Shown here one piece after another: positions 199-25,404 of a DNA stretch of 64,000 nt; position 1 is the stretch's first letter, and the number at the start of each line of letters is the position of its first letter. Origin of the DNA: Octopus bimaculoides. Its lineage: Eukaryota. The notes beneath the pieces were generated by a model. The model was not told the DNA's origin, did no database searches, and worked only from the letters and a program-made list of their open reading frames with translations. Location of the stretch: positions 16,210,438-16,274,437 of the forward strand of contig NC_068991.1 of the NCBI RefSeq assembly GCF_001194135.2. Reading direction: 5' to 3'. The position numbers were made by a program, and so were the translations under genes.

Positions 199-693
199 GT
201 GTTATCGTGTACACTGTTTTGTCTTGGTATAAAAGATGGACTACAGCAAATATTATGCTCAATACCACAGATTTGCTTGTCAGTTGTTTGACCTTAACCA
301 GTTGAGCATGTCCCTTGGTGGCTGATGATATGTGCATCTGTGATCATGAGCAGAAGTAGTGGAGGAGCATCATAGCCGTGTGTTGAAAGGAATTCTTAGA
401 GGTTTGGATAATTCACCTTTGGAAACATGGGTGGTTCGTTCAACATCCTTAAACAACCCGTATTTAGGGACCATTTGAGCGGGATGGACTACTCGACCAG
501 AAGAAAATTCTAACTGGGCCCCACCTGCACCGTCATGTGCTGTTTATCTTGATATGAGATCATCATGTCGCGCACATATGGTTGTGATGTATGTGCCTGG
601 TGTACCCTTATCAGACGGGTAGTCATGGTGGGTATACTGGGCTTCATATATTTTACCCCAGTGTCACTTTGATGGTATGCACTGCTCTCTCAC
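197..693 (-). mobile_element. Dispersed repeat (retroposon-like family); second copy at 5424-5656 (+) and a fragment at 9588-9730 (+)
   Basis: 197-693 is the reverse complement of the gtgagagagcagtgcatg...gacactggggtaaaatatac...ggtggggcccagttagaattttcttc block seen at 5424-5656; ends in an (ATT)n tail. Confidence 0.75.
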
Positions 694-2499
694 ACAATAA
701 TAATAATAGTACAGGAATAAATTATGTTTATTGTACACCAATTAGTGTAGTATTGTATGATATGCCCAATCAGTGATCGTCTCATCACTATTTCAGCATG
801 TACAGTGAAGATCATTCATTGCTCACAATATAATAACAGAAGTTAAGAAAAGATTGTAAATAAGTAAACAATAAAAATAGCTGAAAGCTAAAAGAAATAT
901 AACAAAAAAAACTACAATTTCTTGGAAGTCATCCAAAAAAACCCTCCTAGGAGTGTCCATCATTCCCAAATATTCTTATTAAAGTCAAGCATAAAAATAA
1001 TTGAGGATTGGGTCTGTCTGACCAGAAATATCCTGCAAATAAGAATGCAGGAAATACAAACCAACTAGGTTACTTCTACTCAATCAGCCAACTTGCTAGA
1101 AATGGCAGCCAAAATTCTTCTTCATATTACATCCTGTTGGCATTTTGTTTTTATTTTCTGGGGTTTTTTTTTTTGTTTTTAAAGGACAAATAGGGAAACA
1201 TTAAATAATGCAGACCTTGATATACTGTGCCTGAATACTGCAGGAAAGCAGTGATAGTCAAAGGATAAGAGTCCTTTTGACCATAGGGCTGCTTGGTCCT
1301 AACAGATTTAAAATTAAAAACAAACCACCACTACCCCTACCACCACCAATACTACTACTACTGCTGGTTATGATGCAAGTTATTTCTACAGACTCATAAC
1401 GGATACTAATATTTTGTTTGTAAATTACGCTATTTACCTTTACACATACATACCCACATACAAACGTTCACATATATATACATGTGGATGTAAGAATATA
1501 TATAGGCACATAGATATATAGATATAGTATTATTTTATATATATATATATATATNNNNNNNNNNNNNNNNNNNNNNNNNNNNNNNNNNNNNNNNNNNNNN
1601 NNNNNNNNNNNNNNNNNNNNNNNNNNNNNNNNNNNNNNNNNNNNNNNNNNNNNNNNNNNNNNNNNNNNNNNNNNNNNNNNNNNNNNNNNNNNNNNNNNNN
1701 NNNNNNNNNNNNNNNNNNNNNNNNNNNNNNNNNNNNNNNNNNNNNNNNNNNNNNNNNNNNNNNNNNNNNNNNNNNNNNNNNNNNNNNNNNNNNNNNNNNN
1801 NNNNNNNNNNNNNNNNNNNNNNNNNNNNNNNNNNNNNNNNNNNNNNNNNNNNNNNNNNNNNNNNNNNNNNNNNNNNNNNNNNNNNNNNNNNNNNNNNNNN
1901 NNNNNNNNNNNNNNNNNNNNNNNNNNNNNNNNNNNNNNNNNNNNNNNNNNNNNNNNNNNNNNNNNNNNNNNNNNNNNNNNNNNNNNNNNNNNNNNNNNNN
2001 NNNNNNNNNNNNNNNNNNNNNNNNNNNNNNNNNNNNNNNNNNNNNNNNNNNNNNNNNNNNNNNNNNNNNNNNNNNNATATATATATATATATATATATAT
2101 AAAATAATACTATATATATATATATATATTAATGGTGCAAAACTGAGTAATTTCAATCTGGTTGATTACTGATGAAGAATTAGAGACCTTCTGTGCCTGT
2201 CTTCTGTCCATTTGTGCATTCAGTATACGTTATACATTTTTTACAATACATTTTTTATTTTAGATATATATGTATATGTATATATGTATATGCACACACA
2301 CACACACATATACATATACATACATGTGTGTGTGTGTGTGTGTGTAATTATCAGTTTGTTGCCCATAAGTTAGAAAATAGTACATTCAATATGAGAAATG
2401 AAGACTCTCTTTCAGAATCAAAGATAGGCCCAATGTTACAATGCTAGCCAACTTAATATGGCAATTAAAAGAGGATCCCTTACCATACAAAAGCAACTA

Positions 2500-2985
2500 G
2501 AAATTGTTACAACGACCTGGACCACATCTGAATGAAAGTGATCATTGCAAGCTTTGCTTGGTAGAAAGGAAAAAATCATCCTCGTCCATATGCATCACAT
2601 GACCATACAAACACAGACTTCTCTCTTACATGCAACATATGATGCCTCATATACCCAATTTTTCTATTAATTCATTTACAGTGTTGCACATGCATACTGA
2701 TATTACCCATCCAGTGGAGCATGCTGGTTTCATTTCTTTCAAGCCTTCACAGGTCTTCTGTAACTACAGCCCATGTTTCACTGCCATGCAGCATAGTTGT
2801 ACATACACAGACATCATACAATCTGCCTTTCACTCTGCGGTAGAGATCCTTTGTTACTAACAACGGTAGTAGCTCACTGAACTTTGCCCAGCCGATTCTT
2901 TTTCTAGCAGCTACACTTTCAGAATTTCCTCTTCCACTGCTAACTTGTTCATGTAGGTAAAGGAAGCTATCCACACCTAAAATTT
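2500..2985 (-). mobile_element. RTE-clade LINE remnant (RT C-terminal region)
   Basis: Translation ESVAARKRIGWAKFSELLPLL...VKGRLYDVCVCTTMLHGSETWAV...RLERNETSMLHWM resembles RTE LINE ORF ends; decayed. Confidence 0.8.
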
Positions 2986-3762
2986 CTTCTCTAGTTCAGG
3001 TAGGGATTCAGTTATAAGAACAAAATCATCTACATAGAGGAACTCCCAAGGGAAGCCAGACAGCTGCTCTGGCAACGATCACGCTCGAACGGTGCTCTTA
3101 GTGCTCCACTGGTACAGGTGCCATCACGATTTCACTTTCGCTTGCCCCAACAGGTCTTCGCAATATAATATATTGTATTTGGGGAGGGTCATTTTTTTAA
3201 TCACCAAATAAACACACGCACTATATATTTGTTCTTCACTCGTTTATTACTGTTCATATTTTAACTCATGTCCATATAGAGGGCGCTATAGAATCAAGGT
3301 GGACAGTGTAGCCAAAATGAATAATATAATTTTATGATTAAAGCAGGGAAAACGAAAATTCAGTTATCTGAACAATTCATAGTAGTCATTTAAAGGCCAG
3401 GTAATCCTGCATGTGTTAAGCAAGGTAAACAAAATGATATTTATGGTGGATCATATGCGTGTGTGTGTGTGAGACGTGTGTATGTATGTATGTATGTATT
3501 TGTAAGCACTCAAATATGTGACAAAATGTTGTGCCTATGTGTGTGGATACATACCAATGCAAATATCAGAATGTAAATATATCTATATGTTCTACACGTA
3601 GACACACAAACACACACACACAGAGGCATACACGTACACTTCCTTAACTCTAAATTTGACAGATTTGACAGCCACCATTTAAACTAGTTGTTCTCTCCCT
3701 CTATCACCTCTCCCTTTCTCCCTGCTTCTGTCTCTCTGTCACTCTCCCTTTCTCTCTCTCTC

Positions 3763-3807
<45 letters not shown>

Positions 3808-3810
3808 ATA

Positions 3811-3862
<52 letters not shown>

Positions 3863-3957
3863 GATATAGATATGTCACAGTTTCTCTCTCTCTCTCTCTC
3901 TTTTCTCTTTATACCGTTCTAGCTCTGCTTCTCTCTTTCTCATTCTTTAATTTCGTC

Positions 3958-4019
3958 ATGTCAAATTTATTCTTATTCATCTGTGCTGGCCTCGTTCTTA
4001 CAAGGAATTCCTTAACAAG
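3958..4019 (+). CDS. EGF gene exon 1 (signal peptide)
   Basis: ATG at 3958 with G at -3; hydrophobic [11 protein letters not shown] core; AG|GTTTGA donor at 4020 in phase 2, which fits exon 2 (AG+T = Ser). Confidence 0.65.
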
Positions 4020-4681
4020 GTTTGATGCTTATAATTATTATTTGTTTTGTTTCTTGTGTTAATGATTATTATTATTATTCTTTTAGCTCGGGTTTCATTG
4101 GAAATCCTGTAGCGGGCTGCTATGTGCAGCCTAGGATACCATGCTATCTGTTCTTTTCAGCTAATACTTTTCTGATGATTCTGTCCATGCCAAAGAGGCA
4201 AAACCATTTGTAACAAACCTACTGAGCACTCTATTCTGGTTTCTTTTATATTCCTCTTGATGCCTTCTGATACTGTCCACAACGACACAACAGCAATTGA
4301 CACTATCTTCACCTTCTTCATATTCCATAGTTGGGCTATTTCATATTTAACAGGGTTATATATGTCTATTTTGTTTTTGCCTTCTTTCTTGACTATTTGT
4401 GGATTAAAGGGACATGCAATATCACTTATATAGCATTATTTGTTTTTAAAGCAGTGAGCTGGTAGACTTCTTAGCATGCTGGGCAAAATGCTTAGCAACA
4501 TTTCATGTGTCCTTATGTTCTGAGTTCAAATTCCGTTGAGACTAACTTTGCCTTTTATCCTTTCAGGGTTGATAAAAAAAAAGTACCAGTTGTGTACTGT
4601 GGTTGATGTAATCAACTATCCCTTCCCCCAAATTTCAGGCCTTGTGCCTATAGTAGAAAGAATTATTATTATTACTACTAC

Positions 4682-4714
<33 letters not shown>

Positions 4715-4837
4715 CATTATTAATATTATTATTATCATTATTATTATTATCAATATTACTATTATCATTATTATTATTATCAATATTATTATTATTATTA
4801 TTATTATCAATATTATTATTATTATTATTATTATCAA

Positions 4838-4911
<74 letters not shown>

Positions 4912-5678
4912 NNNNNNNNNNNNNNNNNNNNNNNNNNNNNNNNNNNNNNNNNNNNNNNNNNNNNNNNNNNNNNNNNNNNNNNNNNNNNNNNNNNNNNNNN
5001 NNNNNNNNNNNNNNNNNNNNNNNNNNNNNNNNNNNNNNNNNNNNNNNNNNNNNNNNNNNNNNNNNNNNNNNNNNNNNNNNNNNNNNNNNNNNNNNNNNNN
5101 NNNNNNNNNNNNNNNNNNNNNNNNNNNNNNNNNNNNNNNNNNNNNNNNNNNNNNNNNNNNNNNNNNNNNNNNNNNNNNNNNNNNNNNNNNNNNNNNNNNG
5201 CTGCAATCTGGCAGAATAATTAGCATGCTGGGCGAAATGCTTAGCGGTATTTCGTCTGCCGCTACGTTCTGAGTTCAAATTTTGTTGAGGTGGACTTTGC
5301 CTTTCATCCTTTCAGGGTCAATAAATTAAGTATCAGTGAAACACTGGGGTCAATGCGATTGACTAGTCCCCTCCCCACAAATTTCAGGGTTTTTGCCTTT
5401 AATAGAAAGTATTATTATTATTGAGTGAGAGAGCAGTGCATGCTACCAAAGTGACACTGGGGTAAAATATACAAAGCCCATTATACCCATCATGACTACC
5501 CGTCTGATAAGGGTACGCCAGGCTCATGCATCACAACCATATGTGCGCGACATGGTGATCTCATATCAAGATAAACAGCGCATGACCTCGCAGGTGGGGC
5601 CCAGTTAGAATTTTCTTCAGGTCGAGTAGCCCATCCCGCTCAAGAGGTCCCTGAATAATAATAGTAATAATAATAATA

Positions 5679-5719
<41 letters not shown>

Positions 5720-8700
5720 CAAAGGCAGTGAGCTGGCAGAATCCTTAGTATGAATTTCACTCATTGCTAAATTCTGAGTTCAAATTCTCCCGAGGTCGAC
5801 TTTGCCTTTCATCCTTTCAGGGTCGATAAAATGAGTACCACTTGAGTACTGGGGTCGATGTTATCGACTATTCCCTGCCCCCAAATTTCAGGTCTTGTGC
5901 CTAAAATAGAAAGGATCATTATTATCATTATTGTTTTTGGTGGTGTTGATGTTGTTTTTGCTGTTCTTTTTGTTGTTGTTATTTATAGTAAACTGGGGAG
6001 TTATATGATTAACTAAAAAATCTTTGAAGGTGTGCCCCAGCATGGCCATGGTGTAATGACAGAATAGCAAAATAAAAGAATAATGCTACAAATAATAACA
6101 ATATCATTTCTGACAGTACATAAACTGTCAATCTGTCAGTGATTTTGGTGCAGCTCCGATGTTATTGTTGTTATTGTTGCTGATGGTGTTACTGTTAAGT
6201 TTGGCTATGTTCATTTATGTGTGTGTGTGTGTGTGTGTGTGTGTGGATTTATGAGTATGCGTTTGTGTGATTTGTGTATGTGTATGTGTGCGTATGTGTG
6301 TGCATGTGTGTGAGAAAGAATTTGTGAGTATATGTTTGGGTGATTTGTGTGTGTGTGTGTGTGTGTGTGCGTGTGTGTGTGTGAGAATTTGTATGTGTGT
6401 GTGTGTGAATTTTTGAGTATGCGTTTGTGTGATTTGTGCATGTGTGTATGTGTGTGCATGTGTGTGAGAGAGAATTTGAGAGTTTGCGTTTGAGTGATCT
6501 GTGTGTGTGTGTGTGTGTGTATGTGAGAATTTGTATGCGTTTGTGTGATTTGTGCATGTGCATATATGTGTGCATGTGTGTGAGAGAGAATTTGCAAGTA
6601 TGTGTTTGGATGATTTGTGTGTGTGTCTGTGAGAATTTGTATGCATTAGTGTGATTTGTGTGTGTGTGTGTGTGTGTAATGTGTGGTGTGTGTGTGTGTG
6701 TTTGAATAGGTGTGAGTTTGTGGCAGTGTGTGTATTCATGTGTATGTCTGTAAGTGAGCATACATTTGTGTATGTTTGTGTGCTGTGGGCTTGTGTTTGT
6801 AAATGTGTAAGTCTGTGCATATGTGTGGATATCTGTATGTGCACCCATTTTAATGTGCATGTATGTATTTGTGTGTGCATATACGTGTATCCGTATGCAT
6901 GTGTCTCCTGTATATGTGTGCTTGTGTGTATGTATGGTTGTCTAGTGTGTGTGTGTCTATATTTTCTGTGCTTGCATATAAGTATATGTATGTGGATGAG
7001 TGCTTCTGTATATTTCAATGTGCAACTCTAAGACTTCTGTATATTTATGAGGTTGTCACTGAATGTTTTTATTGTACTTTAACAATTTACACATTCTTTT
7101 GACTATAACAATAGATTCTGACATGGACACAAGGCCAAACATTCTGCAGGCTGATTAAACTGATTTAGCCAGTATTTATTTGATTGGTCCATAACCCCAC
7201 CCGCTGGAAGCGTAATTTGCTTGCATAGCCAGTGGAGTGGCATCATTTGATAGCTAAAGCAATGTGAAGCACATTGTGATCAGCAATGTGTAACAACATC
7301 CAATAGTCTAGTCGATACTATGATATTATATATATATATATATATATATATNNNNNNNNNNNNNNNNNNNNNNNNNNNNNNNNNNNNNNNNNNNNNNNNN
7401 NNNNNNNNNNNNNNNNNNNNNNNNNNNNNNNNNNNNNNNNNNNNNNNNNNNNNNNNNNNNNNNNNNNNNNNNNNNNNNNNNNNNNNNNNNNNNNNNNNNN
7501 NNNNNNNNNNNNNNNNNNNNNNNNNNNNNNNNNNNNNNNNNTATATATATGTACATAAAACATAGCAGACACACAGGTGTGTGTGTGTGTGTGTACACAT
7601 GTGTGCACACCACATGTGTGCACACCACATGTGTAGTGATATATATAAAAAAATGTAGTCCTACTTTTAGCAATACCACATACCTTTTCATAATAACTTG
7701 TAAGTTTATTAAAGCAATAATTTTTATCTTAACACACACAAACAAGCTCACAAATATATACTTATGTGTGTGTATACATATATATATATGTATAAACATA
7801 CGTGCGTGTGTGTATGCATGTCTATAATCGCACGCACGCGCCTCATGTAACAATACGTTATATAAGCGTGGAATCCTAGGAAACCGGTGGCGGTTTTAAA
7901 AGGTGAATAAATGTTTGCTCTAAAAGAAGAAAAAAACGTGACATTTAATCATAAAATATCACAAGAGGAATATTTTTAAAAAAACCAATCTTTTTCAAGT
8001 AAATCCATTCATGTTTGTGCTAGTACTAGTTGTCTCCCCTCCACGCATCTCTCTCTCAGCTTTTCTTCAGGAAATATTGCTTTGCCATTGAAACTTGTTA
8101 AATATATTTTCTCGATTTTACTGTGTTAGGCAATCGCTAATAGTGTTTTATCGGAAATTTTTGAAACTAACACAAACTGTATGTGTTGGATAATTTTGTG
8201 TGTTCGTCCTGGGTAGGTCTGTCAGAATTATCTTCTCCTTAATATGTACGAACCATATCTACATATTTATATATACTCTTTTACTTGTTTCAGTCATTTG
8301 ACTGTGGCCATGCTGGAGCACCGCCTTTAGTCGAGCAAATCGACCCCAGGAATTATTCTTTAGAAGCCTAGTACTTATTCTATCGGTCTCTTTTGCCGAA
8401 CCGCTAAGTTATGGGGGCGTAAACACACCAGCATCTGTTGTCAAGCGATGTTGGGGGAACAAACACAGACACACAAACATATACACACACATACATATAT
8501 ATATATACATATATACGACGGGCTTCTTTCAGTTTCCGTCTACCAAATCCACTCACAAGGCTTTGGTCGGCCCGAGGCTATAGCAGAAAACACTTGCCCA
8601 AGATGCCACACAGTGGGACTGAACCCGGAACCATGTGGTTGGTAAGCAAGCTACTTACCACACAGCCACTCCTGCGCATTTATATATTTATCTTAATTTT

Positions 8701-11510
8701 CAATTGCGCGCATGACTGTCGTGGCGGAACTCCACTAATCATAGAGGTACTTGATTAGGCCCTGAATTGTACTTAATTATGACCACCACAATTACCAAAT
8801 TCACTTCATTTGCATGAAATAACAACCAAATTTACTTTAAAAATCGCTCATACTTTTTCTTTTTCTTTTTTTTTTTTTTGAAAAGGATAGACACATAGTC
8901 TTATGTACTTTATACTTGAATATATAAACAAAAAAACTAAAGCAGTCAAGACTGGATTAGAGAAGTATTAAGGCTAACTTAGGAGTGGAATCACCTACTA
9001 ATCCATTAGCACCAAATGATCTTGTTACAATTGTTATTGTTTAGCCACAAGCTATCCACGACCAGATTATCTCGTGTCCTTTTTTTTTTTTGATGTCAGT
9101 AGTGTTGTAAGATTTTAGGAACAAATTGGCTGTTATTTCTAGCAAGATGACTGACCATGTAGATGTTCCCTCATTGACTCATAACTGGCATTGTTTTTAA
9201 ACATTACATTCAACATTACCTGTTTCTCAGCTTGTTTGTTTATTTGTATGTATGTATGTGTATGTATGTATGTATGTATGTATGTATGTATGCATGTATG
9301 TGATTGTATGTATCTATGTATGTATGTGTATATGTGTGTGTATGTATGTATGTTCTTTTCTTTGGCCATTATTTTATTTCTTTACCCATTTCATTTTACA
9401 GCAGCGAAACATGCACCAACCAGTGCAACTGCAAAACCTGGTTTGGGGTGAATGCATGCAAATTTAGGTATGTTGACAGCCTTCTTCTTCTTCTTCTTCT
9501 TATTCTTCTTCTTATTATTATTATTCTCCTCCTCTTCCTCCTCCCTCCCCCTCCATCCCTCCCCCTCCTCCTCTTCCTCCTCATCATTGAGTGAGAGAGC
9601 AGCACATGCNNNNNNNNNNTTATTCTCCTCCTCTTCCTCCTCATCATTGAGTGAGAGAGCAGCACATGCCACCAAAGTGACACACACAGGTACAATTATA
9701 CAAAGCCCAATATACCCATCATGGGGACTGTCACATTAAGTTCACAGCATACAACTACTATGATCTTGGTGTGTTTACGTGCCCGTAACTTAGTGGTTCG
9801 GCAAAAAGAGATCGATAGAATAAGTACTAGGCTTACAAAGAATAAATCCTGGGGTTGATTTGTTTGACTAAAGGCAGTGCTCCAGCATGGCCACAGTCAA
9901 ATGACTGAAACAAATAAAAGAATAAAAGAAAGAATAATTAATTCTTCGCTTAGATGGTGAGCTAGCAGAATTGTTGGCACACAGGGCAAAATGCTTAGTG
10001 GCATTTTATTCAGCCTTATGTTCTGAGTTCAAATTCTACCAAGGTCACCTTTCAGGGCTCAATAAAATAAGTAGCAGTTAAGTACTGGGGTAGGGTGATG
10101 TAATCAACTTAACCCCTCTCCCAAACTTAGTGGCCTTGTACCAACATTTGAAATCAATAATTAATTCTTTGTTTTAGGTGGCAAGCTGGCTGAAGTGTAA
10201 GCATGTCGGACAAAACACTTAGCAGCTTTTCTCCCATTTTTTTTTTTATATTCTAAACTCAAACCCCACCAAGGTTTAATTTTGCCTCTCATAATTTCAG
10301 TGGGGGCAATAAAATAAAGTACCAGTCAAGAACAGTGGGGTCAACGTAATCAGCTTAATCCCTCATCCTCACAGAATTGCTGGTCTTGTGCCAAAATTAG
10401 AAAAGGACTATTAATTCTTTATTTGTGTGTTTAATTTTACAGTGAACATCTCCAGAAGAACTGTAAATGTTGTCCAGGTTTCTACATCACAAACGAATAC
10501 ACATGTGAAGGTTTGTACATCACTGTACTTTTTAACTTTCTTACTGGTTCCATTTATTGTGCTGTGGACATGCTGGGCCATACGTTTTCATCAGTACGTG
10601 TGGGTGGCATGTAAAAGCACCCACTACACTCTGAGTGGTTGGCGTTAGGAAGGGCATCCAGCTGTAGAAACTCTGCCAAATCAGATTGGAGCCTGGTGTT
10701 GCCATCCGGTTTCACCAGTCCTCAGTCAAATCGTCCAGCCCATGCTAGCATGGAAAGCGGACGTTAAACGATGATGATGATGAATAACATCAACCACCAC
10801 CACCACCACCAAAACTACTCCAGAACTTATTTTCCTGACTAGGTCTTATTCATTTTATTGTAATTTGAAAAATTCAAGGCAAATCGAAACTGGGAGAAAT
10901 TCAAACTTAAGAAGATACCCAAGAAAATACCACATGACGTTTTATCTGATGCTGTTCCATTTCTGCCATCTACCGGTCATATTTGATTTATGGTAGGATT
11001 TCAATTGTTCCCATTTGCTTTTGTTTGTGATTATTGTTATTGTTATTGTTTAACCACATCTCATCTCAGAATATGCAAACTTATGATATATATATATATA
11101 TATATATATATCAGATTGGAGGCTGGTGTTGCCATCCGGTTTCACCAGTCCTCAGTCAAATCGTCCAACCCATGCTAGCATGGAAAGCGGACGTTAAACG
11201 ATGATGATGATGATGATGATGATGATATATATCTGTAAAAATATGTGACACTTATTCGGTAGCCATGATAAAACTCCGAGTTTCGGATGCCAGGGTGGGT
11301 ACCCACACCAACATCTCTTCAGTTATCCGGACAGGAATTTTCAATGGCCGGATAACTGAAGAGATGTTGGCATGGGTTCCCATCCCAGCATCCGAAACTC
11401 GGAGTTTTATCATGGCTAACAAATAAGTGTCACATATTTTTACAGATAAATTCCTCTATTTACATAATATCAAGGTCTCTTTCTTTCTTTTGTTGTCCTT
11501 TCTATCAATA

Positions 11511-11551
<41 letters not shown>

Positions 11552-11959
11552 CCATTATCATCATTGTTTCAAAGTCCAATTTTCCATACTTGCATGGGTT
11601 GTACAGAATTTGTCAAGGTAGATTTTCTCCAGCTGCATGCCCTTCCTGTCACCAACTTTCACCTGTTTCCAAGTAAGGTGATATTTCCCTATGACCAGAC
11701 ATGTCTTGGATGACTGGAAATGAAAGGACACCATTTGCATGACACTGAAAACTATCATGTGATGTCAAAGAAAGGAGACACCAACACACACATGCACATT
11801 TTTCTCCGTGTTTTTCTCCTTGTCTCCATATTCTTTCTGTTGAAGAGCGTAGCTCGAAATGTTAAAGACTTTCCGTATTCCCGGGCGTCATACTAATACA
11901 TCCTTTTGTTGTTTACACCACCTGTCCTCGTCTGTTGTTGTTTTTTTTCATACATTCTC

Positions 11960-12002
<43 letters not shown>

Positions 12003-13903
12003 ACAGACATCTTTCAGTTTCCATCAACCAAATCCACTCTCAAGGATTTGGTCAGTCTGGGGCTATGGTGAAAGATACTTGCCCAAGTGATTGGGAAACA
12101 AACTTATTACTACACAGCCACATCTATATACTGAAGCAACTACTACAATGTAGAAGAGCCAGTTTATCCATTTGAAAACATACAAAATCTGTTAATATTC
12201 ACCTTTTCTATATTTCTAAACAATACTGTAAAGTTGGTGTGTGTGAAACAGTATCATTGTCTCTGGGGTGTATAGCCAGGCCACTATTATCTCCCTTCCT
12301 ATTCATAAGGTGCTATAATGCTTCATTGCACCATTGCATTAATTAAATAAAATCTATGAAATCCCTCTCTCAAACATTTTTGTTTTTCCCTACAGATGTA
12401 AATGAATGTCTAAAGAAACCAGTAATCTGTCAACAGGACTGTATAAACACCATAGGAAGTTATCACTGTTCTTGCAAAAAGGGGTTTTACCTGGAAAAAA
12501 ATAACCACACCTGTAAAAGTAATTATGACTTTTTATTTATTCATTTTTAACTGTCCTGTGATATACAGAACATCAGTCTGTCCATCCCTTGCCATGCTCT
12601 TGTTTATTTCAACAAGTTTTTTTACTGTTCTTGTCATCAGGAGTTTTACCTGGAGGAAAATAAACACACCTGTAAAAGTAATAATGACATTTTATTTATT
12701 TATTCATCTTTAACCATTCTGTGTTGTACAGAGTATTGATCCAGCCACCCTATGCTGTACTCCTAGTTTATTTCCAAGAGTTTTATTGCATACCTTTTGA
12801 GAAGAACTCTATGTGTGGTTCAAACTAGTATGTGTGAAACAGTATCTTCGTCTCAGGGTGTATATAGCCAGGTCACTATTATCTCCCCTCCCATTCAACG
12901 TCTTGTCATTTCGGCATGTGAAACTTCTAACCCAGACACGTTTTTTTGTTTTTTTTTGCCTCTTTCCCATTATTTCTCTTTATTTTTCTTTCCTCATTTC
13001 TCTCTGTTGAAGAGCATAGGCTCGAAATATCAAAGACTTTTCTATTTTCCCTGAACCAGACTAATACATCTTGTTTGTTGTTCCCTCACCTGTCTCTATC
13101 TTTTGGTTTTTGTACATTTGAACCATATGAACCTTGTGTGTGTGTGTGCATGTGCATAATGGGAGTGCAACTCATAAGCAAGTCTATACAGTATATGTGG
13201 TCAGAATTGACATGTCTGCAATGGTGTGAATATCTCTGGATGTATATAGTTGTGGTGAGGCTTCAGTTTATGATACAAGTATATATGGTATATGTAGTCA
13301 GAATTGGAATGTCTGAAATGGTATAACTGTCTCTGTGAGTATATATTTGTGATGACGGTACAAGTTATATGCAAGTACAAATGGTACATGTAGTCAGAAT
13401 TAGTCTGTGTGAAATGGTATGACCATCTCTGGGTGTATATGATTGTAATGAGGGTGCAATTTATATCCAAGTACATACGGTATATGTCGTTAGACTGTTA
13501 TGCCTGGAATAGTTTAACTCTCCCTGGGTGTTTATAAAAGCAATAGAAGTGCAACTTATATGCAAGTATATACAGTATGTATAAATAGAATTGATGTATC
13601 TGACATGGTATGAATGTCTTAGTGAGTGTATATAATAATGGTGATATTATCATAGAGTGAAATGCTTTTTATTTCTGTACAATACAGGTAAAACTAATTG
13701 TCAGAACATGTATCCCCAGTGTGAACACTATTGCAAAGACCTCAAAACTGGTCCAGTTTGCTTTTGTAATGAAGGTTATGAACTGTCTCACGATGAATTT
13801 TCTTGTGTTCGTAAGTACTTTAAGTTTTATATCACATCAAAATATAATCAAATTTCGAATACTCATCATCGTCATCATCATCATCATCATTTAACATCTA
13901 TCT

Positions 13904-13960
<57 letters not shown>

Positions 13961-15012
13961 GTCTCTGTCTCCTCCTCTCTCTCTCTCTCTGTTCATGTGT
14001 GTGAGCATATTTCTCTTTATGTGTCCAAGGAAAGGAAACACATTTATGTCAGTCGTGTTCAATTGTCAAACTGTACTGACTTTCTCTTTATCTTTCCCTT
14101 TCACTTTCTCTTTCTCTCTCTCTTTCACTTTCTCTTTATGTTCATATTTATGTGTGCAGGCATGTGACTGGTGTGCCAAAGGTTCAACCATTCATTCAAT
14201 TCATCACCTTCATTTACTTTTATCATACTGAACACATATGTATTTATTTCAGACAAAACGAAATGTATTCCTCACTTCAACTTCTGTCACCATACTTGTG
14301 TCCCACATCACACAGGGTATAAATGCAAATGCAGAAAAGGTTATAAGCTAGACCCCAACGGTTACAGTTGTACTAGTAAGTATTTAAAATTGTTTATTAA
14401 GAATTCAATTTATGTTTTTTTGTGCATTTTAACTGGTACTCTGTCAGTTATGATGAGGGTCTCAGGAGATCTAATCAACAGAGCAGCCTGCTCATGAAAT
14501 TAAAGTGCAAGTGGCTGAGTGCTCCACAGACACATGTACCCTTAGTGTAGTTCTCAGAAAAATTCAGCATGACACAGAATGTGACAAAGCTGGCCCTTTG
14601 AATTACGGGTATGACTCATTATTGCTTGGTGAGTGGACTGGAGCAATGTGAAATGAAGTGTCTTACTCAAGGATACAATGCACCACAAGGAATCGAATGT
14701 TAATGATTCTGCCAGCTCACCGCCTTCATTATAATAATAATAATAATAATAATAGCAATAATAATAATAATAATGATGATGACAATAATAATAATAGCAA
14801 TAATAATTATAATAATCAACAAAAAACTTCCAAACTGTGGTTTTATTACCTTAAATGCTTTTGTCATTTCAGAAATAACTCGTTCTCATAGAAGGCATCA
14901 TTTCTTTAGAGGTATGCATAGACATGTTAAACCTACAACACTCCAGCCTGACCATGTCCATCACCATCCCTATGACTACCACCATGTGGAGAATGACTAC
15001 TACTATCACTAA
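3958..15012 (+). CDS. Predicted secreted EGF-repeat protein with His-rich C-terminal tail, 212 aa; join(3958..4019,10443..10510,12396..12518,13688..13810,14253..14375,14873..15012)
   Basis: Six exons with GT-AG boundaries and matching phases (2,1,1,1,1) give 639 nt = 212 aa + TAA. Translation: [48 protein letters not shown]...TCK SKTNC...SCV HKTKC...[13 protein letters not shown]...YYYH*. Exons 3-6 are strongly supported; exon 1 is inferred from its signal-peptide character and phase match. Confidence 0.8.
4447..5915 (+). mobile_element. Three copies of tRNA-derived SINE family B (about 4447-4660, 5199-5410, 5722-5915) separated by (ATT)n
   Basis: Shared gagctggcagaa...ttagc...ctgagttcaaattc...gactttgcctttcatcctttc...ggtcgat...caaatttcagg sequence in each copy. 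Confidence 0.8.
6213..7020. repeat. Degenerate (GT)n cryptic microsatellite field with recurring gtgatttgtg / gagaatttg units
   Basis: Direct inspection; the His/Thr and Cys/Val ORFs in the track are translations of this repeat. Confidence 0.9.
8275..8677 (-). mobile_element. Full-length tRNA-derived SINE family A
   Basis: Reverse complement of gcgcaggagtggctgtgtggtaagtagc (A-box-like) ...gggttcagtccc (B-box-like) ... internal (TA/TG)n ... gactgaaacaagtaaaagagt tail. Confidence 0.9.
10443..10510 (+). CDS. EGF gene exon 2 ([22 protein letters not shown])
   Basis: ttttacag acceptor and gaag|gtttgt donor; the trailing G plus AT of exon 3 gives Asp of E-D-V-N-E-C. Confidence 0.8.
10590..10783 (+). 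mobile_element. SINE/retroposon family C; further copies 11112-11225 (+), 48452-48790 (-), 57100-57325 (+)
   Basis: Shared ggcgttaggaagggcatccagctgtagaaactctgcc...cccatgctagcatggaaagcggacgttaaacgatgatg with a (GAT)n tail. Confidence 0.8.
11232..11446. mobile_element. Palindromic MITE with 99-bp inverted arms, TA-flanked
   Basis: 11232-11330 is the reverse complement of 11348-11446 with about 8 mismatches; 17-nt loop; TA at 11230-31 and 11447-48. Confidence 0.85.
12396..12518 (+). CDS. EGF gene exon 3, calcium-binding EGF module
   Basis: [41 protein letters not shown] has six Cys, the D-x-N-E-C start and the C-x-N-x4-Y-x-C-x-C hydroxylation consensus; 123 nt, phase 1-1, ccctacag / gtaatt. 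Confidence 0.93.
13160..13630. repeat. Tandem repeat, about 96-bp unit x about 5 diverged copies
   Basis: caagt anchor at 13179, 13276, 13372, 13468, 13563; gtcagaatt at 13200, 13297, 13393. Confidence 0.85.
13688..13810 (+). CDS. EGF gene exon 4, EGF-like module
   Basis: [40 protein letters not shown], six Cys; 123 nt, phase 1-1, atacag / gtaagt. Confidence 0.92.
14253..14375 (+). CDS. EGF gene exon 5, His-rich EGF-like module
   Basis: [40 protein letters not shown], six Cys; 123 nt, phase 1-1, atttcag / gtaagt. Confidence 0.92.
14873..15012 (+). CDS. EGF gene terminal exon, His/Tyr-rich tail
   Basis: tgtcatttcag acceptor in phase 1; [49 protein letters not shown]; AATAAA copies follow near 15100-15115. 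Confidence 0.8.
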
Positions 15013-15037
15013 CTCGACCAGTAAGCTCCTCTACAAA

Positions 15038-15078
<41 letters not shown>

Positions 15079-16257
15079 AATAATAATAATGATAATAATA
15101 AATAAATAAATAAATTAGTTAAAACCAACTAAGATGTATTTCAAGAGAAAATTACGAAGAAATGGATATATTTGGAATGGAATTGATTGTTATGAGAATA
15201 AAGAACACAGTATGTACAATACTGATTTCTGATTCTTTTGTTTTTTAAATCTTAACCCCACCCACCCAGTATATCTACAGCTAATAATGAGAAAATGCTC
15301 AGTGTTTTTATTAGATAAATTCAAGAAGGTAGTGATGTACTGAATGATGAATGCAAAAGAACCAAAAAAAATAATTGAATTTAAGTCTGCCTCTTAGTTG
15401 AAGAGTTTGAAAATGGGGAGAAAAAGATTTCGACAAATGCAACTGATTGATTGGTAAAATTAAATGATTAATTAAATAATTGATAGGTGCAGGAGTGGCT
15501 GTGTGGTAAGTAGCTTGCTTACCAACCACATGGTTCTGGGTTCAGTCCCACCTTGGGTGTCTTCTACTATAGCCTCGGGCCAACCAAAACACCTTAACTG
15601 CACAGCCATCAGCCATACCTGTGTCTATTATGGGAATAAGGAGGCAAAGTAAGATTAATTAATAGATATGGCTGGGTATATGAGAGAATGATCACGGAAG
15701 AAGTTCTCAGTTCTTAGTATAGATAAATAGATGGTGCATCATCACAAGTGATTGCAGCTGCAAATGGTTTGATGTGGTAATTGCAAAATTTTCCCAAGGG
15801 GAAATAATACATTCCTTGTAAGCAGTTGAGGGTCAGTGACTGTAAGAGCATCCAGCCCTAGAAAAATCTGCAAGACGCATCAAACCCATACAAGAATGGA
15901 AGAGTGGACATTAAAGGAAAGGATAGTGTATATCCTTATCATAATAACTACAAGAAAACCAACAAGAGGGCAGTGCTCTTGCTAATTCTTTTTTCTTTTT
16001 TTTTAATGATCTTAAATTCTGAAAAAATTCATTAAAAAGTCAATTTGCATTTTTAGTTCTTCTTATAATATTAGAAATTGCATTTTCATAATGAATGTAA
16101 TTAATTTTCTTTATTTGTGTGTATCTAATAACATTTCCTTCAATAAAACCATATCAATTTACATGTAATACAATACAAAATATTTCTTTTCTTTAGCATA
16201 GTGCGATGACTGTATATAACCTGAAAAATTTAAGCACAGCTATCTGTCTGTCTGTCC

Positions 16258-16329
<72 letters not shown>

Positions 16330-16358
16330 CACAGTTGAGATTCTAACCCTTTATATAC

Positions 16359-16418
<60 letters not shown>

Positions 16419-17816
16419 TGTGTGTGAGTCTGTGTGTCTGTGTGTGTGTACAGTGGGGAATGGAGTATAAACATTTCGATTTTTTAAAAAATTATTTAAT
16501 CTAGTGTTTCCTAGTCTGGGATTTGCACACAGCTGGAGATCCACGAAGACAGCACAGAGGAGGTGGAGATGGAGATGAGGGCAGGCTCCATGAGCTGGGT
16601 TCAAAATTTGTTGAACAGACAGACTTTTCAAAGTCTTGAGATCTGTAGGAAAAATTCATAAAAAAAAAAATTGGATCCTAGATAGTAAAAAGATTGGATT
16701 GAGGACTACTCATAGTAGTCATAAGAAAAGGGGCAGACCCCATAATCTTTGCAACCCCTCTCCCACTCACTTTAGACCTGCTGAGGTCGTTGTTGTTGTT
16801 GTTAGTACCATTGATGGTGGTGGTTGTAGTTTTGTTGTTGCTTAGCCCCAGGTCAACCCTGATGCAGCAGACTTATGGTGAAAGATGTAGTTTTGATCAT
16901 CTCATCCATATTTTTCTTTCAGACTAACTTATCAAACGTGTTCTTCATTTTTCTTAGGACAACAGAGCAGTCTCTTTGACTCTGTAACATGTCGGAGTTC
17001 AATTCACAAAATATTACTGTTATATTGGAGTTTAATATATAAAAATATTAGTAAAGAATAAAAAGTTTAGGAAGGTATAACAATGCACTATAGAACAAAA
17101 AAAATGGACTATATACCTGTTGTAACTTGGTAAACTATAGTCCGATGATATTTGGAATTAGAATTCCTTCTTCAGTTCTTATTTACTGGAGTCTCTGCTA
17201 TAAACTGTCTATATTACTGTCACATTGGAAATCAATCAGTAAAAAAAATACTGTCACAATGAAGATCGATCAATAAACTACTAGTGTTATGCTGGAAATC
17301 AATCAACAAACGATTACTGTCACACTGGAGATTAATCAATAAAAAATTACAATAATCTATAAAAAAAAAAATTCTGTTGCACTTTACATGGAGTCTGACG
17401 GTTTAACCACTGAGCCATGTTTTAATAATCATACCTATTTATAACTTAATGAATACTACATTTTGCAAGTCTCCATATATTAATATGGATTTTCTACAGC
17501 CTTCAATTATATTTTTAGAAATTTGTGGTGCACCCAGATACCCATTATAGCACACAAATGCACTGAGGTGCACCATTTTTGAACCAACCACTGTGGTAAG
17601 ATATAATTTGAGGTAAAGTTGGCTGCCCTTTCTAGCAATTTGAGCTTCTGCATAAAGGGTTTCCTCACTGAAGCAGTTGATAATTTGCTTAGAACTTCTG
17701 TAGTGATACCTGTAAGGCGAAATGTAGAAGGAAAGAGAATTCCAGAGGGTTGTAAATTTTGAGGAGGAAGGACTGTATTAAATATTTAGTATAGGCCTTG
17801 TGTATGTGAGAGACTG

Positions 17817-17870
<54 letters not shown>

Positions 17871-20263
17871 CACACATATATATATACACTCACACACACT
17901 ACATACATATATCTTTTATAGATTATCTTATACTGAGTTCAGTCATTGGATTGCAGCCATTCCATGCCTCCTTTGTTTCACCTTTTGACTGGTACTTTAT
18001 TTTATTGATGCCCAAAAGGATGAAAGGCAAAGTTAACCTTGGCAGGATTTGAACTTAGAATTTGAAGAGCCAGAAAAAAAATACGTCTAAGCATTTTGTC
18101 CACCGCACTAACAATTCTGGCAACTCAATAATGAACTTATTAACACCTTTGATAAATAGGTCTGCTCAATCAAGACTGGACCTCGGGCTATAAACAATAA
18201 CAACAACAACAACAACAACAACAATCAAATAATGTTCATGATGAAAAGTTGTGTAATAACAATTTGTAACAATTGATTAATTAAATAAAAAGACAATCTC
18301 TCTCTTACTTTTCCTTATCTTTCTTATCTTTTTCCCCATCACATCTTCTGTATCACTCCCCCACCTTACTCACCTTCTCTCGCTCTCTCTCAATCTCTCT
18401 TTCTCTTCATCGCACACGCAAACACGCACACGCACACACACTTTCCTTTTTTCTCTCTTCATCTCCCTCTCTTTTCCCTGTATTTCTTTACCCTTTCTCC
18501 TGCTTTCACTTCTTCACTGTTTCCTCACTGCTCCCCCCCTCTCTCTTTGGATCAAATTTTCTCTTTCTCTCAGTGACTTTCTCTTTCTCTTTCATTCTCT
18601 GTGTTTTACATACTCTTTCACCTCCCCCCTCTCTCTTTCTCTTCACCTTAAGTCAATGCTAATCTAATCTATCTTCCATTAAGGATAATTTGTTGGGTGA
18701 TATTCAGTGTTTTCTAGTAAGAACAGAAATCTTGGTTAATCCACCCATCAATCTACCATGATATTATCAGGGGGAGGGGTAGTAATTGGCAATTAACTTT
18801 TATAGGGGAGGAGATGTGGTTTGAGTGTGGGTGGGGGTAGTGTTTGTTGTGATGGGGGAGGGTAACTTAAATGGAGAGAAATAAGTCCGAAACAACATAT
18901 ACACTAAGAATGGACCTGGTATTCACACATAAACATTAAATCAGATTGTGACAATTTAACCCACATTAATCACTGGTATCATGTCATGTATAAACACCAG
19001 TGTGGGTTTTGCTGCCTCAGGCACTGATTATCAGATTTTATGATGGAAATGGTTTCGTGACATTTCCTTTTTATTTTGTATTTAGATACGTATTAATATA
19101 TATACATAAATATATATATATATATATATANNNNNNNNNNNNNNNNNNNNNNNNNNNNNNNNNNNNNNNNNNNNNNNNNNNNNNNNNNNNNNNNNNNNNN
19201 NNNNNNNNNNNNNNNNNNNNNNNNNNNNNNNNNNNNNNNNNNNNNNNNNNNNNNNNNNNNNNNNNNNNNNNNNNNNNNNNNNNNNNNNNNNNNNNNNNNN
19301 NNNNNNNNNNNNNNNNNNNNNNNNNNNNNNNNNNNNNNNNNNNNNNNNNNNNNNNNNNNNNNNNNNNNNNNNNNNNNNNNNNNNNNNNNNNNNNNNNNNN
19401 NNNNNNNNNNNNNNNNNNNNNNNNNNNNNNNNNNNNNNNNNNNNNNNNNNNNNNNNNNNNNNNNNNNNNNNNNNNNNNNNNNNNNNNNNNNNNNNNNNNN
19501 NNNNNNNNNNNNNNNNNNNNNNNNNNNNNNNNNNNNNNNNNNNNNNNNNNNNNNNNNNNNNNNNNNNNNNNNNNNTATATATATATAATATATAGTGTAT
19601 AGTGTAAAGTGTAGAGTAAAATTGTTTTTATTATAATTGAACATAAAGACAAACATCAATATAATTTAGATTATTACATATATAATACATATGTATTACA
19701 TATATCAAGGATAAAATGTCTTTCTTCAGCCATTGGTTTTTAAGGCCAGTTTCCCAAATTCTGTGGCAAATATAGATGCCAGTCCATTGCAGCGTTACTC
19801 ATTTTTGCTCAAGAATGCAATGCATCACTCAGTCCAGGAATCAAAACCACATTTTATGATCATGAGTGTAACGCCCCAACCACTAAGCCACTGTTACATA
19901 TGTAACACATACATAATGGAAAAACACCCTGCAGAATGAAATGGTCAATAAAATAGAAATAAAGTTTTAAAATGTTATCCTTTCTGTGTGGCCTGGTGCC
20001 AAATGATCCAAGGCCCCAAACTGGTCAGCAGCTGAGTGGTAGTGGACCCCTGCTCTACAGGGTCCAAGATGGGGATTATAGAGGGTATTTATGTCTGCTT
20101 GTAATGAAATGGTTGGTTAAGTCTATTATTGAAAGCATGGTTTATGCTGAGCCTGGTCTTATTCAATTGTGAATGACAGCCATAATAGGTGGTGAATAAT
20201 TCATATGTGGATTATACATACATGTGTCTAATTATAAATGTATACAACCTTATAAAAGTTTGT

Positions 20264-22283: not shown

Positions 22284-22649
22284 GGCATAGGAGTGGCTGT
22301 GTGGTAAGTAGCTGGCTTACCAACCACATGGTCCCGGGTTCAGTCCCACTGCGTGGCATCTTGGACAAGTGTCTTCTACTATAGCCTCGGGCCGACCAAA
22401 GCCTTGTGAGTGGATTTGGTAGACGGAAACTGAAAGAAGCCCGTCATATATATGTATATATATATATGTATGTGTGTATGTGTTTGTGTGTCTGGGTTTG
22501 TCCCCCCAACATCGCTTGACAACTGATGCTGGTGTGTTTATGTCCCCGTAACTTAGCGTTTCGGCAAAAAGAGACCGATAGAATAAGTACTAGGCTTCTA
22601 AAGAATAAGTCCTGGGGTTGATTTGCTCGACTAAATGCGGTGCTCCAGC
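22284..22649 (+). mobile_element. SINE family A copy running into an N gap; a 5' half copy lies at 21002-21160 (-)
   Basis: Same head, internal microsatellite and 3' part as the 8275-8677 copy. Confidence 0.88.
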
Positions 22650-23663
22650 NNNNNNNNNNNNNNNNNNNNNNNNNNNNNNNNNNNNNNNNNNNNNNNNNNN
22701 NNNNNNNNNNNNNNNNNNNNNNNNNNNNNNNNNNNNNNNNNNNNNNNNNNNNNNNNNNNNNNNNNNNNNNNNNNNNNNNNNNNNNNNNNNNNNNNNNNNN
22801 NNNNNNNNNNNNNNNNNNNNNNNNNNNNNNNNNNNNNNNNNNNNNNNNNNNNNNNNNNNNNNNNNNNNNNNNNNNNNNNNNNNNNNNNNNNNNNNNNNNN
22901 NNNNNNNNNNNNNNNNNNNNNNNNNNNNNNNNNNNNNNNNNNNNNNNNNNNNNNNNNNNNNNNNNNNNNNNNNNNNNNNNNNNNNNNNNNNNNNNNNNNN
23001 NNNNNNNNNNNNNNNNNNNNNNNNNNNNNNNNNNNNNNNNNNNNNNNNNNNNNNNNNNNNNNNNNNNNCGTGTGCGTGTGTGCGCATGTGCGTGTGTGTG
23101 CATGTCCTGTGCACACATAAATATATAAACATACACATAGATAACACAGAAAAGATACACACACACACATACACACACACACACAAACACATAAATTGAG
23201 ATATAAACAGATACACATACATTCATATATAGCCATAATACACATACTGACATCATAGATTCAGTCACATATACTTACATACATACACAAACACATATTT
23301 ACATATGCACACACACATGGATATACACATACATACTCACACAAATAACAATGTATACACACATACACGCACATGTACACACACACACACACAACCACAT
23401 GTATACAGATTACATAAAGCACAAACTCACTTATAAATATATGGGACTAAAATAGAAATTTAATCCTTAAATAAAATAAAAATATTTTCCACAAACATTT
23501 TATATGAAAGGAAAAAAATTCAATCAGAAATCTTTGCTTGAAACTTTTGTTCTGTTAGTCTTAACATAATTAATGCAGGAGCAGGGTGGTAAAAGTACAT
23601 AATATATTCTAATTAGAAATAATTACACATTGTAGAATAAAACATTAGTTAATGATTAATATG

Positions 23664-24706: not shown

Positions 24707-25404
24707 CAGTGGTTCCAAACTTTTTCGAGCTGCCGCCCCCTTGACACCCAGGTCACATTGCTAGCGCCCCCACCCCAACTGACCATCACAAACATAGACC
24801 TCTTGCTGAAGCAAATTCAAAGCAACTGTATTTCACGAATAAAACTTCACCTATAGGTGCAGGAGTGGCTGTGTGGTAAGTAGCTTGCTTACCAACCACA
24901 TAGTTCCGGGTTCAGTCCCACTGCATGGCACCTTGGGCAAGTGACTTCTGCTATAGCCTCAGGCCGACCAAAGCCTTGTGAGTGGATTTGGTAGACGGAA
25001 ACTGAAAGAAACCCGTCATATATATGTATGTTTGTGTATACGTTTGTGTGTCTGTGTTTGTCCCCCCCAACATCGCTTGACAACTGATGGTGGTGTGTTT
25101 ACGTCCTCGTAACTTAGCAGTTCGGCAAAAGAGACCGATAGAATAAGTACTAGGCTTCCAAAGAATAAGTCCTGGGGTCGATTTTCTCGACTAAAGGCGG
25201 TGCTCCAGCATGGCCACAGTCAAATGACTGAAACAAGTAAAAGAGTAAAAGAGTAACAAACCCATTATTTTGTTCTTTTTACATGAATAGCTCCCCCATT
25301 ATTGCCCCACTTTTCTTCAATGCCCCCTTGGAACTTTCCACCGCCCCCAAGGGGTGGGGTGGGGTGGGGTGGGGTTGCAATACCGCCCACTTTGGGAACC
25401 ACTG
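24707..25404. mobile_element. hAT-type MITE with a perfect 8-bp TSD, interrupted by a SINE A copy (24856-25256)
   Basis: TIRs cagtggttccaaa / tttgggaaccactg; TSD ATTTAGAA at 24699-24706 and 25405-25412. Confidence 0.9.

Follow-up and report, generated by a model that had tools for sequence, protein, structure and literature searches.

Which protein is encoded between positions 3958 and 15012 of a 64,000-nucleotide stretch of the Octopus bimaculoides genome, and what might the C-terminal tail of this protein do? The stretch (hereafter the window; contig NC_068991.1, positions 16,210,438 to 16,274,437, forward strand) had received a first-pass annotation, made from the letters alone, which described a small EGF protein with a histidine- and tyrosine-rich tail. 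We find a single-copy, seven-exon protein-coding gene with a product of 234 residues, a model that leaves practically no room for doubt. As the best overall explanation of this gene we favour, on balance, a secreted EGF scaffold bearing a tail that would be switched by pH or metal ions.

All six exons proposed by the first-pass annotation could be rebuilt from the sequence with canonical AG/GT borders throughout, and their in-frame join of 639 nucleotides reproduces the claimed 212 residues with 23 His (together with 23 Cys and 15 Tyr). This part of the earlier model stands, but it is incomplete: the true model has seven exons and 234 residues, and positions 9402-9467 had been omitted. The clue to the missing exon was given by a protein search that returned the 234-residue protein XP_029643095.1 of Octopus sinensis, which carries 22 additional residues between the first two exons of the six-exon model. 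The exon is in frame (borders ttttacag/CAGCGAAACATG...AAATTTAG/gtatgt) and lies in readable sequence, outside any assembly gap. With exon 2 included, the product is letter for letter identical to XP_014771064.1 (UniProt A0A0L8HML1) of O. bimaculoides, and the 212-residue version has no entry in a collection of 15 billion proteins. By-eye exon reading in an AT-rich, microsatellite-laden genome readily misses short in-frame exons of this kind.

A gap-free O. sinensis sequence (L001) served as comparison locus; positions 327-20000 of the window are collinear with L001 3562-41344. In the O. sinensis locus all seven exons recur at unchanged length and with canonical splice sites, giving 234 residues, and 12 of 12 splice sites are retained in both species. 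The counterparts of exons 1 and 2 are found at L001 10001-10062 and 22513-22578, with 3 mismatches in 62 and 3 in 66 nucleotides, respectively. The two orthologues are identical at 200 of 234 residues (85%), without indels. The gene spans 24 kb in O. sinensis (L001 10001-34206) versus 11 kb in O. bimaculoides, a difference mostly due to repeat insertions, which affect every intron.

Three assembly gaps interrupt the gene in the window, two in intron 1 and one in intron 2; all are intronic and situated in microsatellites. For the first gap, an (ATT)52 run in L001 ends at 11745 and the match to the right flank begins at 11756. The flanks of the second map to L001 16815-16940 and 16925-17703, and those of the third lie approximately 110 nucleotides apart (22654 and 22765), within a (CTT)n run at 22591-22771. 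As neither the seven exons nor the length of 234 residues differ in O. sinensis, the gaps conceal no coding exon. At the other end of the gene, the AATAAA motif 185 nucleotides past the stop occurs in identical context in both species, which supports the choice of the last exon and of the stop codon made in the first-pass annotation. All features of the gene are collected in Table 1.

Table 1. The EGF gene of O. bimaculoides: coding exons, alternative start, predicted poly(A) signal and assembly gaps (window positions; AF2, AlphaFold2; pLDDT, predicted local distance difference test score)
Feature	Position	Strand	Remarks
Coding exon 1 (isoform X1)	3958..4019	+	M1-T20 plus 2 nucleotides; likely signal peptide; donor AAG/gtttga; next intron phase 2
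Assembly gap 1	4912..5199		Intron 1; starts within (ATT)83 run at 4662-4911
Assembly gap 2	7352..7541		Intron 1; flanks adjoin in O. sinensis
Alternative first coding exon, RefSeq isoform X2 (accession ending _052827488.1)	8181..8212	+	Donor GG/gtaggt
Coding exon 2, absent from the first-pass annotation	9402..9467	+	66 nucleotides; first 4 Cys of 8-Cys N-terminal module; phase-2 introns both sides
Assembly gap 3	9610..9619		Intron 2; in (CTT)n/(CCT)n run; 143 nucleotides 3' of exon 2
Coding exon 3	10443..10510	+	Second half of 8-Cys module; EGF_2-type signature C-x-C-x2-[GP]-[FYW]-x(4,8)-C
Coding exon 4	12396..12518	+	Predicted calcium-binding EGF (DVNEC...) with Asx-hydroxylation consensus; 123 nucleotides; phase 1 both sides
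Coding exon 5	13688..13810	+	Non-calcium-binding EGF; 123 nucleotides; phase 1 both sides; AF2 pLDDT 75-84, EGF beta-hairpins
Coding exon 6	14253..14375	+	His-enriched EGF (6 His in 41 residues); 123 nucleotides; phase 1 both sides
Coding exon 7	14873..15012	+	46-residue Cys-free tail and TAA stop; 140 nucleotides without indels versus O. sinensis
Likely poly(A) signal AATAAA	15197..15202	+	185 nucleotides past stop; context identical in O. sinensis at L001 34669; usage predicted

RefSeq and UniProt already list the gene as a predicted, uncharacterised entry, and it is not newly discovered. The automatic RefSeq names are misleading and differ between the two orthologues: the O. bimaculoides product is called "SCUBE2 isoform X1", its O. 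sinensis counterpart "EGF-like and EMI domain-containing protein 1" (EGFEM1). The ATG of the alternative isoform X2 was rejected as a conserved start: the position reads AAG in O. sinensis, and this start is probably minor or spurious. In the protein collection no transcript-derived copies of the protein were found, and each orthologue occurs on one contig only, its chromosome.

The encoded protein is composed of a probable signal peptide, an 8-Cys EGF-like module, a calcium-binding EGF (cbEGF), two further EGFs and a Cys-free tail of 46 residues. The mature chain comprises approximately 213 residues, and its 26 Cys are enough for 13 disulfides. Residues 1-20 contain an 11-residue hydrophobic core (Kyte-Doolittle 9-mer means up to 2.98) and small residues at positions -3 and -1 (S-L-T/S); they likely form a signal peptide, cleaved after SLT. 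Inspection of the sequence revealed no further hydrophobic segment, C-terminus included. A Pfam search of the protein recovered only EGF_CA (38.3 bits, cut-off 27; E = 1.6e-9), cEGF (46.3 bits, cut-off 26.6) and FXa_inhibition (59.5 bits, cut-off 33.4; best stretch at residues 159-187), and no CUB, EMI, collagen, vWA or fibulin C-terminal domain. Pfam and sequence thus agree with the first-pass annotation both in its description of a small EGF-module protein with a His/Tyr-rich, Cys-free tail and in the lack of a transmembrane segment and of collagen, vWA or fibulin C-terminal domains. By these features, the product is very probably a secreted EGF protein.

Membership in the EGF-like/calcium-binding EGF superfamily is indicated by a six-Cys module recognised by PF07645, PF12662 and PF14670, and four EGF_2 signatures (PROSITE-type patterns) match in the protein. 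The cbEGF occupies residues 66-106; the cbEGF pattern [DEQN]-x-[DEQN]2-C...C-x-[DN]-x4-[FY]-x-C and the Asx-hydroxylation pattern match at 66-92, and in both Octopus species they match in this one module only, which is predicted to bind Ca2+ and to be hydroxylated at Asn. Residues 107-147 and 148-188 form plain non-calcium EGFs, the second of which contains 6 His (5 in the O. sinensis orthologue). For each of the three canonical EGFs there is a single 123-nucleotide exon bounded by phase-1 introns, the classic unit of exon shuffling. An AF2 model based on a 14-sequence alignment shows EGF hairpins with pLDDT 70-87 over residues 50-190; a two-sequence alignment gave a mean pLDDT of 41.9 and was unusable. 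Foldseek with this model retrieved tandem-EGF structures only (LRP2, Notch1 EGF4-7, NELL, LDLR, and the light chains of factors IX and X).

The N-terminal module (residues 25-64) follows the pattern C-x3-C-x-C-x8-C-x9-C-x-C-C-x10-C and is interrupted by a phase-2 intron. As exon 2 had been overlooked, the "4-Cys module (CKCC..C)" of the first-pass annotation is actually the second half of this 8-Cys module, the other half being encoded at 9402-9467. An EGF_2 signature is found at residues 50-64, in HMMER alignments with PDB sequences, EGF pairs of LRP4 and LDLR match residues 27-107 (approximately) or 50-107, and MAFFT aligns the module with EGF modules at the cost of a 10-residue insert. In isolation the module matched neither Pfam nor PDB sequences, and AF2 gave pLDDT below 50 for residues 1-47. 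We call it a divergent EGF-like module, which may have an EGF fold.

The tail comprises residues 189-234. Its 12 His, counted in the first-pass annotation, reproduce exactly, and it contains 5 Tyr and no Cys; relative to a background of 2.5% His, the enrichment of 12 in 46 has a binomial p of about 1e-9. The O. sinensis tail has 11 His and 6 Tyr in 46 residues, such that the tails of both species consist of 24-26% His and 11-13% Tyr. The tail is bipartite: a cationic block comes first and is followed by an acidic His/Tyr block, PDxxHHHxYDYxHxENDYYY, in which Tyr is adjacent to Asp or Glu; 7 Lys plus Arg stand against 4-6 Asp plus Glu. The 16-residue cationic block, identical at 15 of 16 positions between the species, is the sole notably conserved piece of the tail. 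There is no Pfam match in the tail, the tail is no repeat of any unit, and in the AF2 model it has no secondary structure, with pLDDT below 50 (low confidence). A word-indexed search of 5.8 billion proteins with the tail only gave no candidate and missed even the source proteins; it is uninformative, not negative. The first-pass annotation had staked its proposal on orthologues having the tail. O. sinensis does keep it, but at a synonymous divergence (dS) of 0.14 this is no more than near-neutral drift would leave. An alternative His tail, a (CAT)n run in intron 5 (13866-13892) that reads HHRHHHHHH in the frame of exon 5, was rejected; in O. sinensis a stop follows the exon after VRK.

The composition of the tail admits the reading that the protein is the precursor of a histatin-like peptide. 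A convertase cut at the Arg pair (SHRR/HH) would free a peptide of approximately 38 residues that acts against microbes or sequesters metals, and the EGF part would serve as its carrier. The pair and the following HHFFRG-HRHVK are invariant in both species, and the content of His, Arg, Lys, Phe and Tyr appears to resemble that of histatins. However, P4 is Ser, such that the site is not a furin R-x-x-R site, the acidic C-terminal half of the tail would offset much of the positive charge, and the tail has no family match. We consider such a precursor very improbable.

A comparison with other proteins places the octopus protein outside the named families. Two word-indexed searches of 5.8 billion proteins gave full-length matches only in O. 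bimaculoides and O. sinensis; the remaining matches are confined to the EGF region, cover 18-73% of the query and have no comparable tail. HMMER against 1.84 billion representatives gave 9731 EGF matches, of which the best 150 are giant multi-EGF proteins, none aligned past approximately residue 198. Absence beyond Octopus is not proven by them, since these best 150 would not include a small orthologue with a score below 176 bits. Many cephalopod genomes may be without protein sets in the searched collections. Provisionally, the gene appears lineage-restricted, in agreement with the first-pass annotation, which had seen no family match and had suggested a lineage-specific protein: the protein searches revealed no full-length relative outside Octopus.

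With SCUBE1-3 the protein shares its probable secretion and cEGF/cbEGF modules of the type C-x-[HQ]-x-C-x-N-T-x-G-S-Y-x-C-x-C, and SCUBE-named proteins occur among the database matches. However, SCUBEs are proteins of approximately 1000 residues in which about nine EGFs are combined with a spacer region, Cys-rich repeats and a C-terminal CUB domain, whereas the octopus protein has 234 residues and four EGF-type modules; no CUB match was obtained at E up to 10, and the chain ends 46 residues past the last EGF. The SCUBE name is a best-hit artefact. EGFL7 and EGFL8 are small and secreted; in both, EGF and cbEGF modules come after an N-terminal Cys module that closes with CC-x-G-[WY]. The octopus module, ending CKCCPGFY...C directly ahead of the cbEGF, resembles this layout. 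However, at E up to 10 neither the full protein nor the isolated N-terminal module matches EMI (PF07546), and the likeness is confined to the CC-x-G-[FWY] ending; the octopus module has approximately 42 residues and 8 Cys versus 70-75 residues and about 7 Cys in EMI, and EGFL7/8 have no His-rich tail. CCBE1 and the fibulins/EFEMP, which are secreted and matrix-associated, have cbEGF modules in common with the octopus protein, itself probably secreted, and CCBE1 has a CC-x-G-Y motif ahead of its EGFs. The octopus protein differs from CCBE1 by the lack of collagen G-X-Y repeats (sequence and Pfam) and from the fibulins by the lack of their C-terminal module; PF22914, present in a fibulin-2-like match (P0158), is missing.

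These likenesses bear on the possibility of a matricellular or signalling role, in which the protein would act as a modulator like EGFL7, SCUBE, NELL or the fibulins. Its EGFs would bind a receptor or the matrix, and its basic His-rich tail would tether it to heparan-sulfate-like polyanions in a Zn2+- or pH-dependent manner, like the His-rich region of vertebrate histidine-rich glycoprotein (HRG). The cEGF/FXa-type modules are common to SCUBE, fibulins, LDLR-family proteins and NELL, the CC-x-G-[FWY] motif is like the ends of EMI-type modules (as in EGFL7 and CCBE1), and the cationic block is the best-conserved part of the tail. Developmental signalling proteins, though, are usually slowly evolving and widespread, whereas the octopus protein evolves fast and the searches gave no full-length relative outside Octopus; Pfam EMI, CUB and fibulin-C are absent. 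A modulator of this type is improbable in our judgement.

Proteins of cephalopod hard tissues provide a further comparison. The HBPs of the squid beak (DgHBP1-3) are secreted, His- and Tyr-containing disordered peptides whose pH-dependent assembly is driven by His together with Tyr (PMC11931252). Gly, Ala and His make up more than 50% of them, and GHG-type motifs recur in tandem (PMC11931252); their pI is about 6. In the octopus tail Gly, Ala and His account for 13 of 46 residues (14 of 46 in O. sinensis) and there is no repeat unit, such that the tail does not qualify as an HBP. Suckerins are built of modular Ala/His and Gly-rich blocks; neither HBPs nor suckerins have EGF modules, and the likeness of the octopus protein to them is an analogy only. 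Outside the cephalopods, the mussel foot protein mfp-2 has EGF repeats with 3,4-dihydroxyphenylalanine (DOPA), mfp-4 is His-rich, and in HRG and histatins His-rich stretches bind metals or polyanions pH-dependently. Taken together, these proteins combine the EGF scaffold, modifiable Tyr and His-rich stretches seen in the octopus protein. However, no sequence relationship was detected; they are either much longer or much shorter than the octopus protein and have repetitive His regions. The octopus protein is a member of the EGF-module superfamily and lacks the defining features of SCUBE, EMI, fibulin, CCBE1 and HBP/suckerin proteins. The combination of EGF modules with a His/Tyr tail does not correspond to a described family.

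How, then, might a secreted EGF scaffold with a switched tail work? The EGF rod would be a stable, Ca2+-stiffened and protease-resistant extracellular scaffold, and the tail would be its working end, the site of interaction. The imidazole of His has a pKa of about 6-6.5. In an acidic secretory compartment the imidazoles would be protonated, and the tail would carry up to approximately 12 more positive charges than at the pH of hemolymph or seawater, where neutral imidazoles could coordinate Zn2+, Cu2+ or Ni2+. Binding by the tail would therefore be switched by pH and metal. Possible partners are polyanions, the matrix, or another copy of the protein, the cationic half of one tail meeting the acidic half of the other. 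Tyr beside Asp or Glu, here YDY and NDYYY, is the usual context of tyrosine O-sulfation, and this acidic half may be sulfated.

A metal-binding, pH-responsive, matrix or gland role, as put forward in the first-pass annotation, is plausible and pure inference. By analogy with HBPs, mussel byssal proteins and HRG, a pH/metal-switched binding or self-association module is the best-supported guess for the tail, and the switch itself is put forward tentatively, with a good deal of doubt. Along this line, a more specific version would make the gene an octopod- or cephalopod-specific, fast-evolving secreted protein whose EGF rod, locked by disulfides, bears a short zwitterionic tail that works as a pH/metal-triggered latch, perhaps dependent on sulfo-Tyr or DOPA. 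Such a protein would stay in solution within the acidic secretory granule and, after release, self-associate or bind a substrate. This version appears unlikely.

Several observations weigh against the switched-tail reading. The signal peptide has no basic n-region and was recognised only by eye and from its hydropathy. The AF2 scores are low in the tail and in residues 1-47, perhaps reflecting the thin alignment and not disorder. A literature search with the four accessions and both RefSeq names matched no relevant paper, and the protein does not occur in the supplements of the O. vulgaris skin-mucus proteome. The remaining points concern conservation. The evolutionary data consist of one pairwise comparison, O. 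bimaculoides versus O. sinensis, and this sole orthologue is too near (dS 0.14) to test the persistence or age of the tail. Divergence of the coding sequence is 56 of 705 nucleotides (7.9%), equal to the mismatch fraction of 8.8 kb of collinear intron and flank, and the substitutions are spread evenly over the codon positions (15:21:20). The tail is not better conserved than the rest of the protein (ratio of nonsynonymous to synonymous divergence, dN/dS, 0.63), and the retention of 9 of 12 His equals the expectation under 26% random replacement. Two further literature matches could not be connected to the gene: the EGF-ZP shell matrix protein of Nautilus is a different gene, and no link could be made to the "egf-like" epidermal marker of the squid cell atlas.

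According to the Nei-Gojobori method, dN is 0.072 and dS 0.140, giving a dN/dS of 0.52 for the whole protein; by region, the ratio is 0.46 for the three EGFs and 1.2 for the N-terminal module, the latter from very few sites. The significance of dN being below dS reaches p of only about 0.03-0.05 (Fisher). An intron-like divergence of the coding sequence and its even spread over codon positions imply that most residues are weakly constrained. The same two observations could be taken to indicate a decaying or mis-predicted gene, whose tail would be functionless, translated low-complexity sequence of microsatellite origin. The locus is indeed rich in microsatellites, including the (CAT)n in intron 5, which reads as a spurious His run, and (ATG)n just past the stop, and the RefSeq entries are predicted (XP_) models. 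However, the neutral expectation is clearly missed. In 20,000 runs of a neutral simulation, the probability of no premature stop together with retention of all 26 mature Cys was 0.0007, that of Cys retention alone 0.0035, and that of 34 or fewer replacements 0.023. Introns contain 103 gap openings in 8840 nucleotides, which predicts 8.2 in the 705-nucleotide coding sequence, where neither an indel nor a stop was observed (P = 0.0003 for the indels). Furthermore, every splice site is kept, the tail is not a repeat, and the independent annotations of both species agree on the model. The pseudogene or artefact reading fails both the neutral simulation and the indel test and retains hardly any credence. 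The picture suggested by these data is a fixed disulfide scaffold and reading frame, between whose cysteines residues change almost freely.

This pattern is also what a fast-evolving effector in saliva or venom, reproduction or immunity would leave: the EGF scaffold is kept while exposed residues and the tail diversify, and the acidic Tyr-rich end (possibly with sulfated DY) or the cationic His block would contact a target in prey, gamete or microbe. The overall dN/dS of about 0.52, the higher value in the N-terminal module, the intron-like divergence and the maintained frame with its 26 Cys are in line with such a role, and the protein is small, probably secreted and lineage-restricted in appearance, with Tyr placed beside Asp or Glu as in known sulfation sites. 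On the other hand, dN/dS is below 1, a single pairwise comparison cannot separate positive selection from relaxed constraint, and neither the window nor the O. sinensis locus contains a tandem paralogue cluster, as toxin and immune families often do. We regard an effector as unlikely, and as the main rival of the switched scaffold; the fast evolution fits it equally well.

The surroundings of the gene reveal further features. A partial tandem duplicate of the cbEGF exon (12624-12732, a copy of 12460-12568) comprises the 3' half of the exon and the start of the intron (...gtaata); it is also found at L001 27066-27149, and its presence in both Octopus species implies that it predates their split. 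Its sole plausible acceptor, tcatcag/GAG, would yield a 37-nucleotide exon with the frame shifted into a stop, and the duplicate looks like a dead relic. An (ATG)13 microsatellite (15037-15075) lies 25 nucleotides past the stop of the EGF gene, followed by AAT/AATA repeats; the 3' untranslated region is largely low-complexity.

An interspersed repeat of approximately 300-450 bp with an internal (TA/TG)-rich microsatellite is located at 8255-8688, 11962-12087, 22320-22589 (-), 24954-25190 (-), 44338-44733 (-), 51531-52124 (-) and 59807-60158, with several copies in the O. sinensis locus; two copies reside in introns of the EGF gene. Scans of the window for tRNAs and against Rfam gave no match, the interspersed repeat included. 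Downstream of the EGF gene, a 609-codon frame at 49385-51211 (+), with an abundance of Ser, Asn and Asp, gives no Pfam match and ends in ...FDTHCHLD, and a later exon at 59062-59382 (+) matches Pfam TatD_DNase (E = 1.7e-15). The frame and the exon, taken together, resemble a gene for a TatD-like DNase that is extended at its N-terminus by a long low-complexity stretch. In O. sinensis the upstream neighbour (L001 1-1458, -) is a Bcl-2-family gene (PF00452), whose counterpart would lie just left of the window start and which is usable as a synteny anchor. The open frames 29619-30053 (+), 55562-55855 (+) and 2750-2995 (-) have no Pfam match. By eye, the first seems to resemble the C-terminus of a mariner/Tc1-type transposase and the other two those of long interspersed nuclear element reverse transcriptases; all three are probably decayed remnants of mobile elements.

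As it stands, the locus is an ordinary uncharacterised gene in which no sign of an unusual function was found. The His-based material chemistry of cephalopods is so far described from beak HBPs and suckerins, whose architecture is quite different. If the latch proposed for the tail of the EGF scaffold were true, it would add a compact and genetically simple module to this chemistry, and a new coupling of EGF modules to His-based assembly. The protein would also stand as a case of a lineage-restricted and rapidly evolving secreted protein in octopuses, and a material or secretion specific to them, e.g., beak, sucker lining, egg-stalk cement or saliva, would have in it a new building block.

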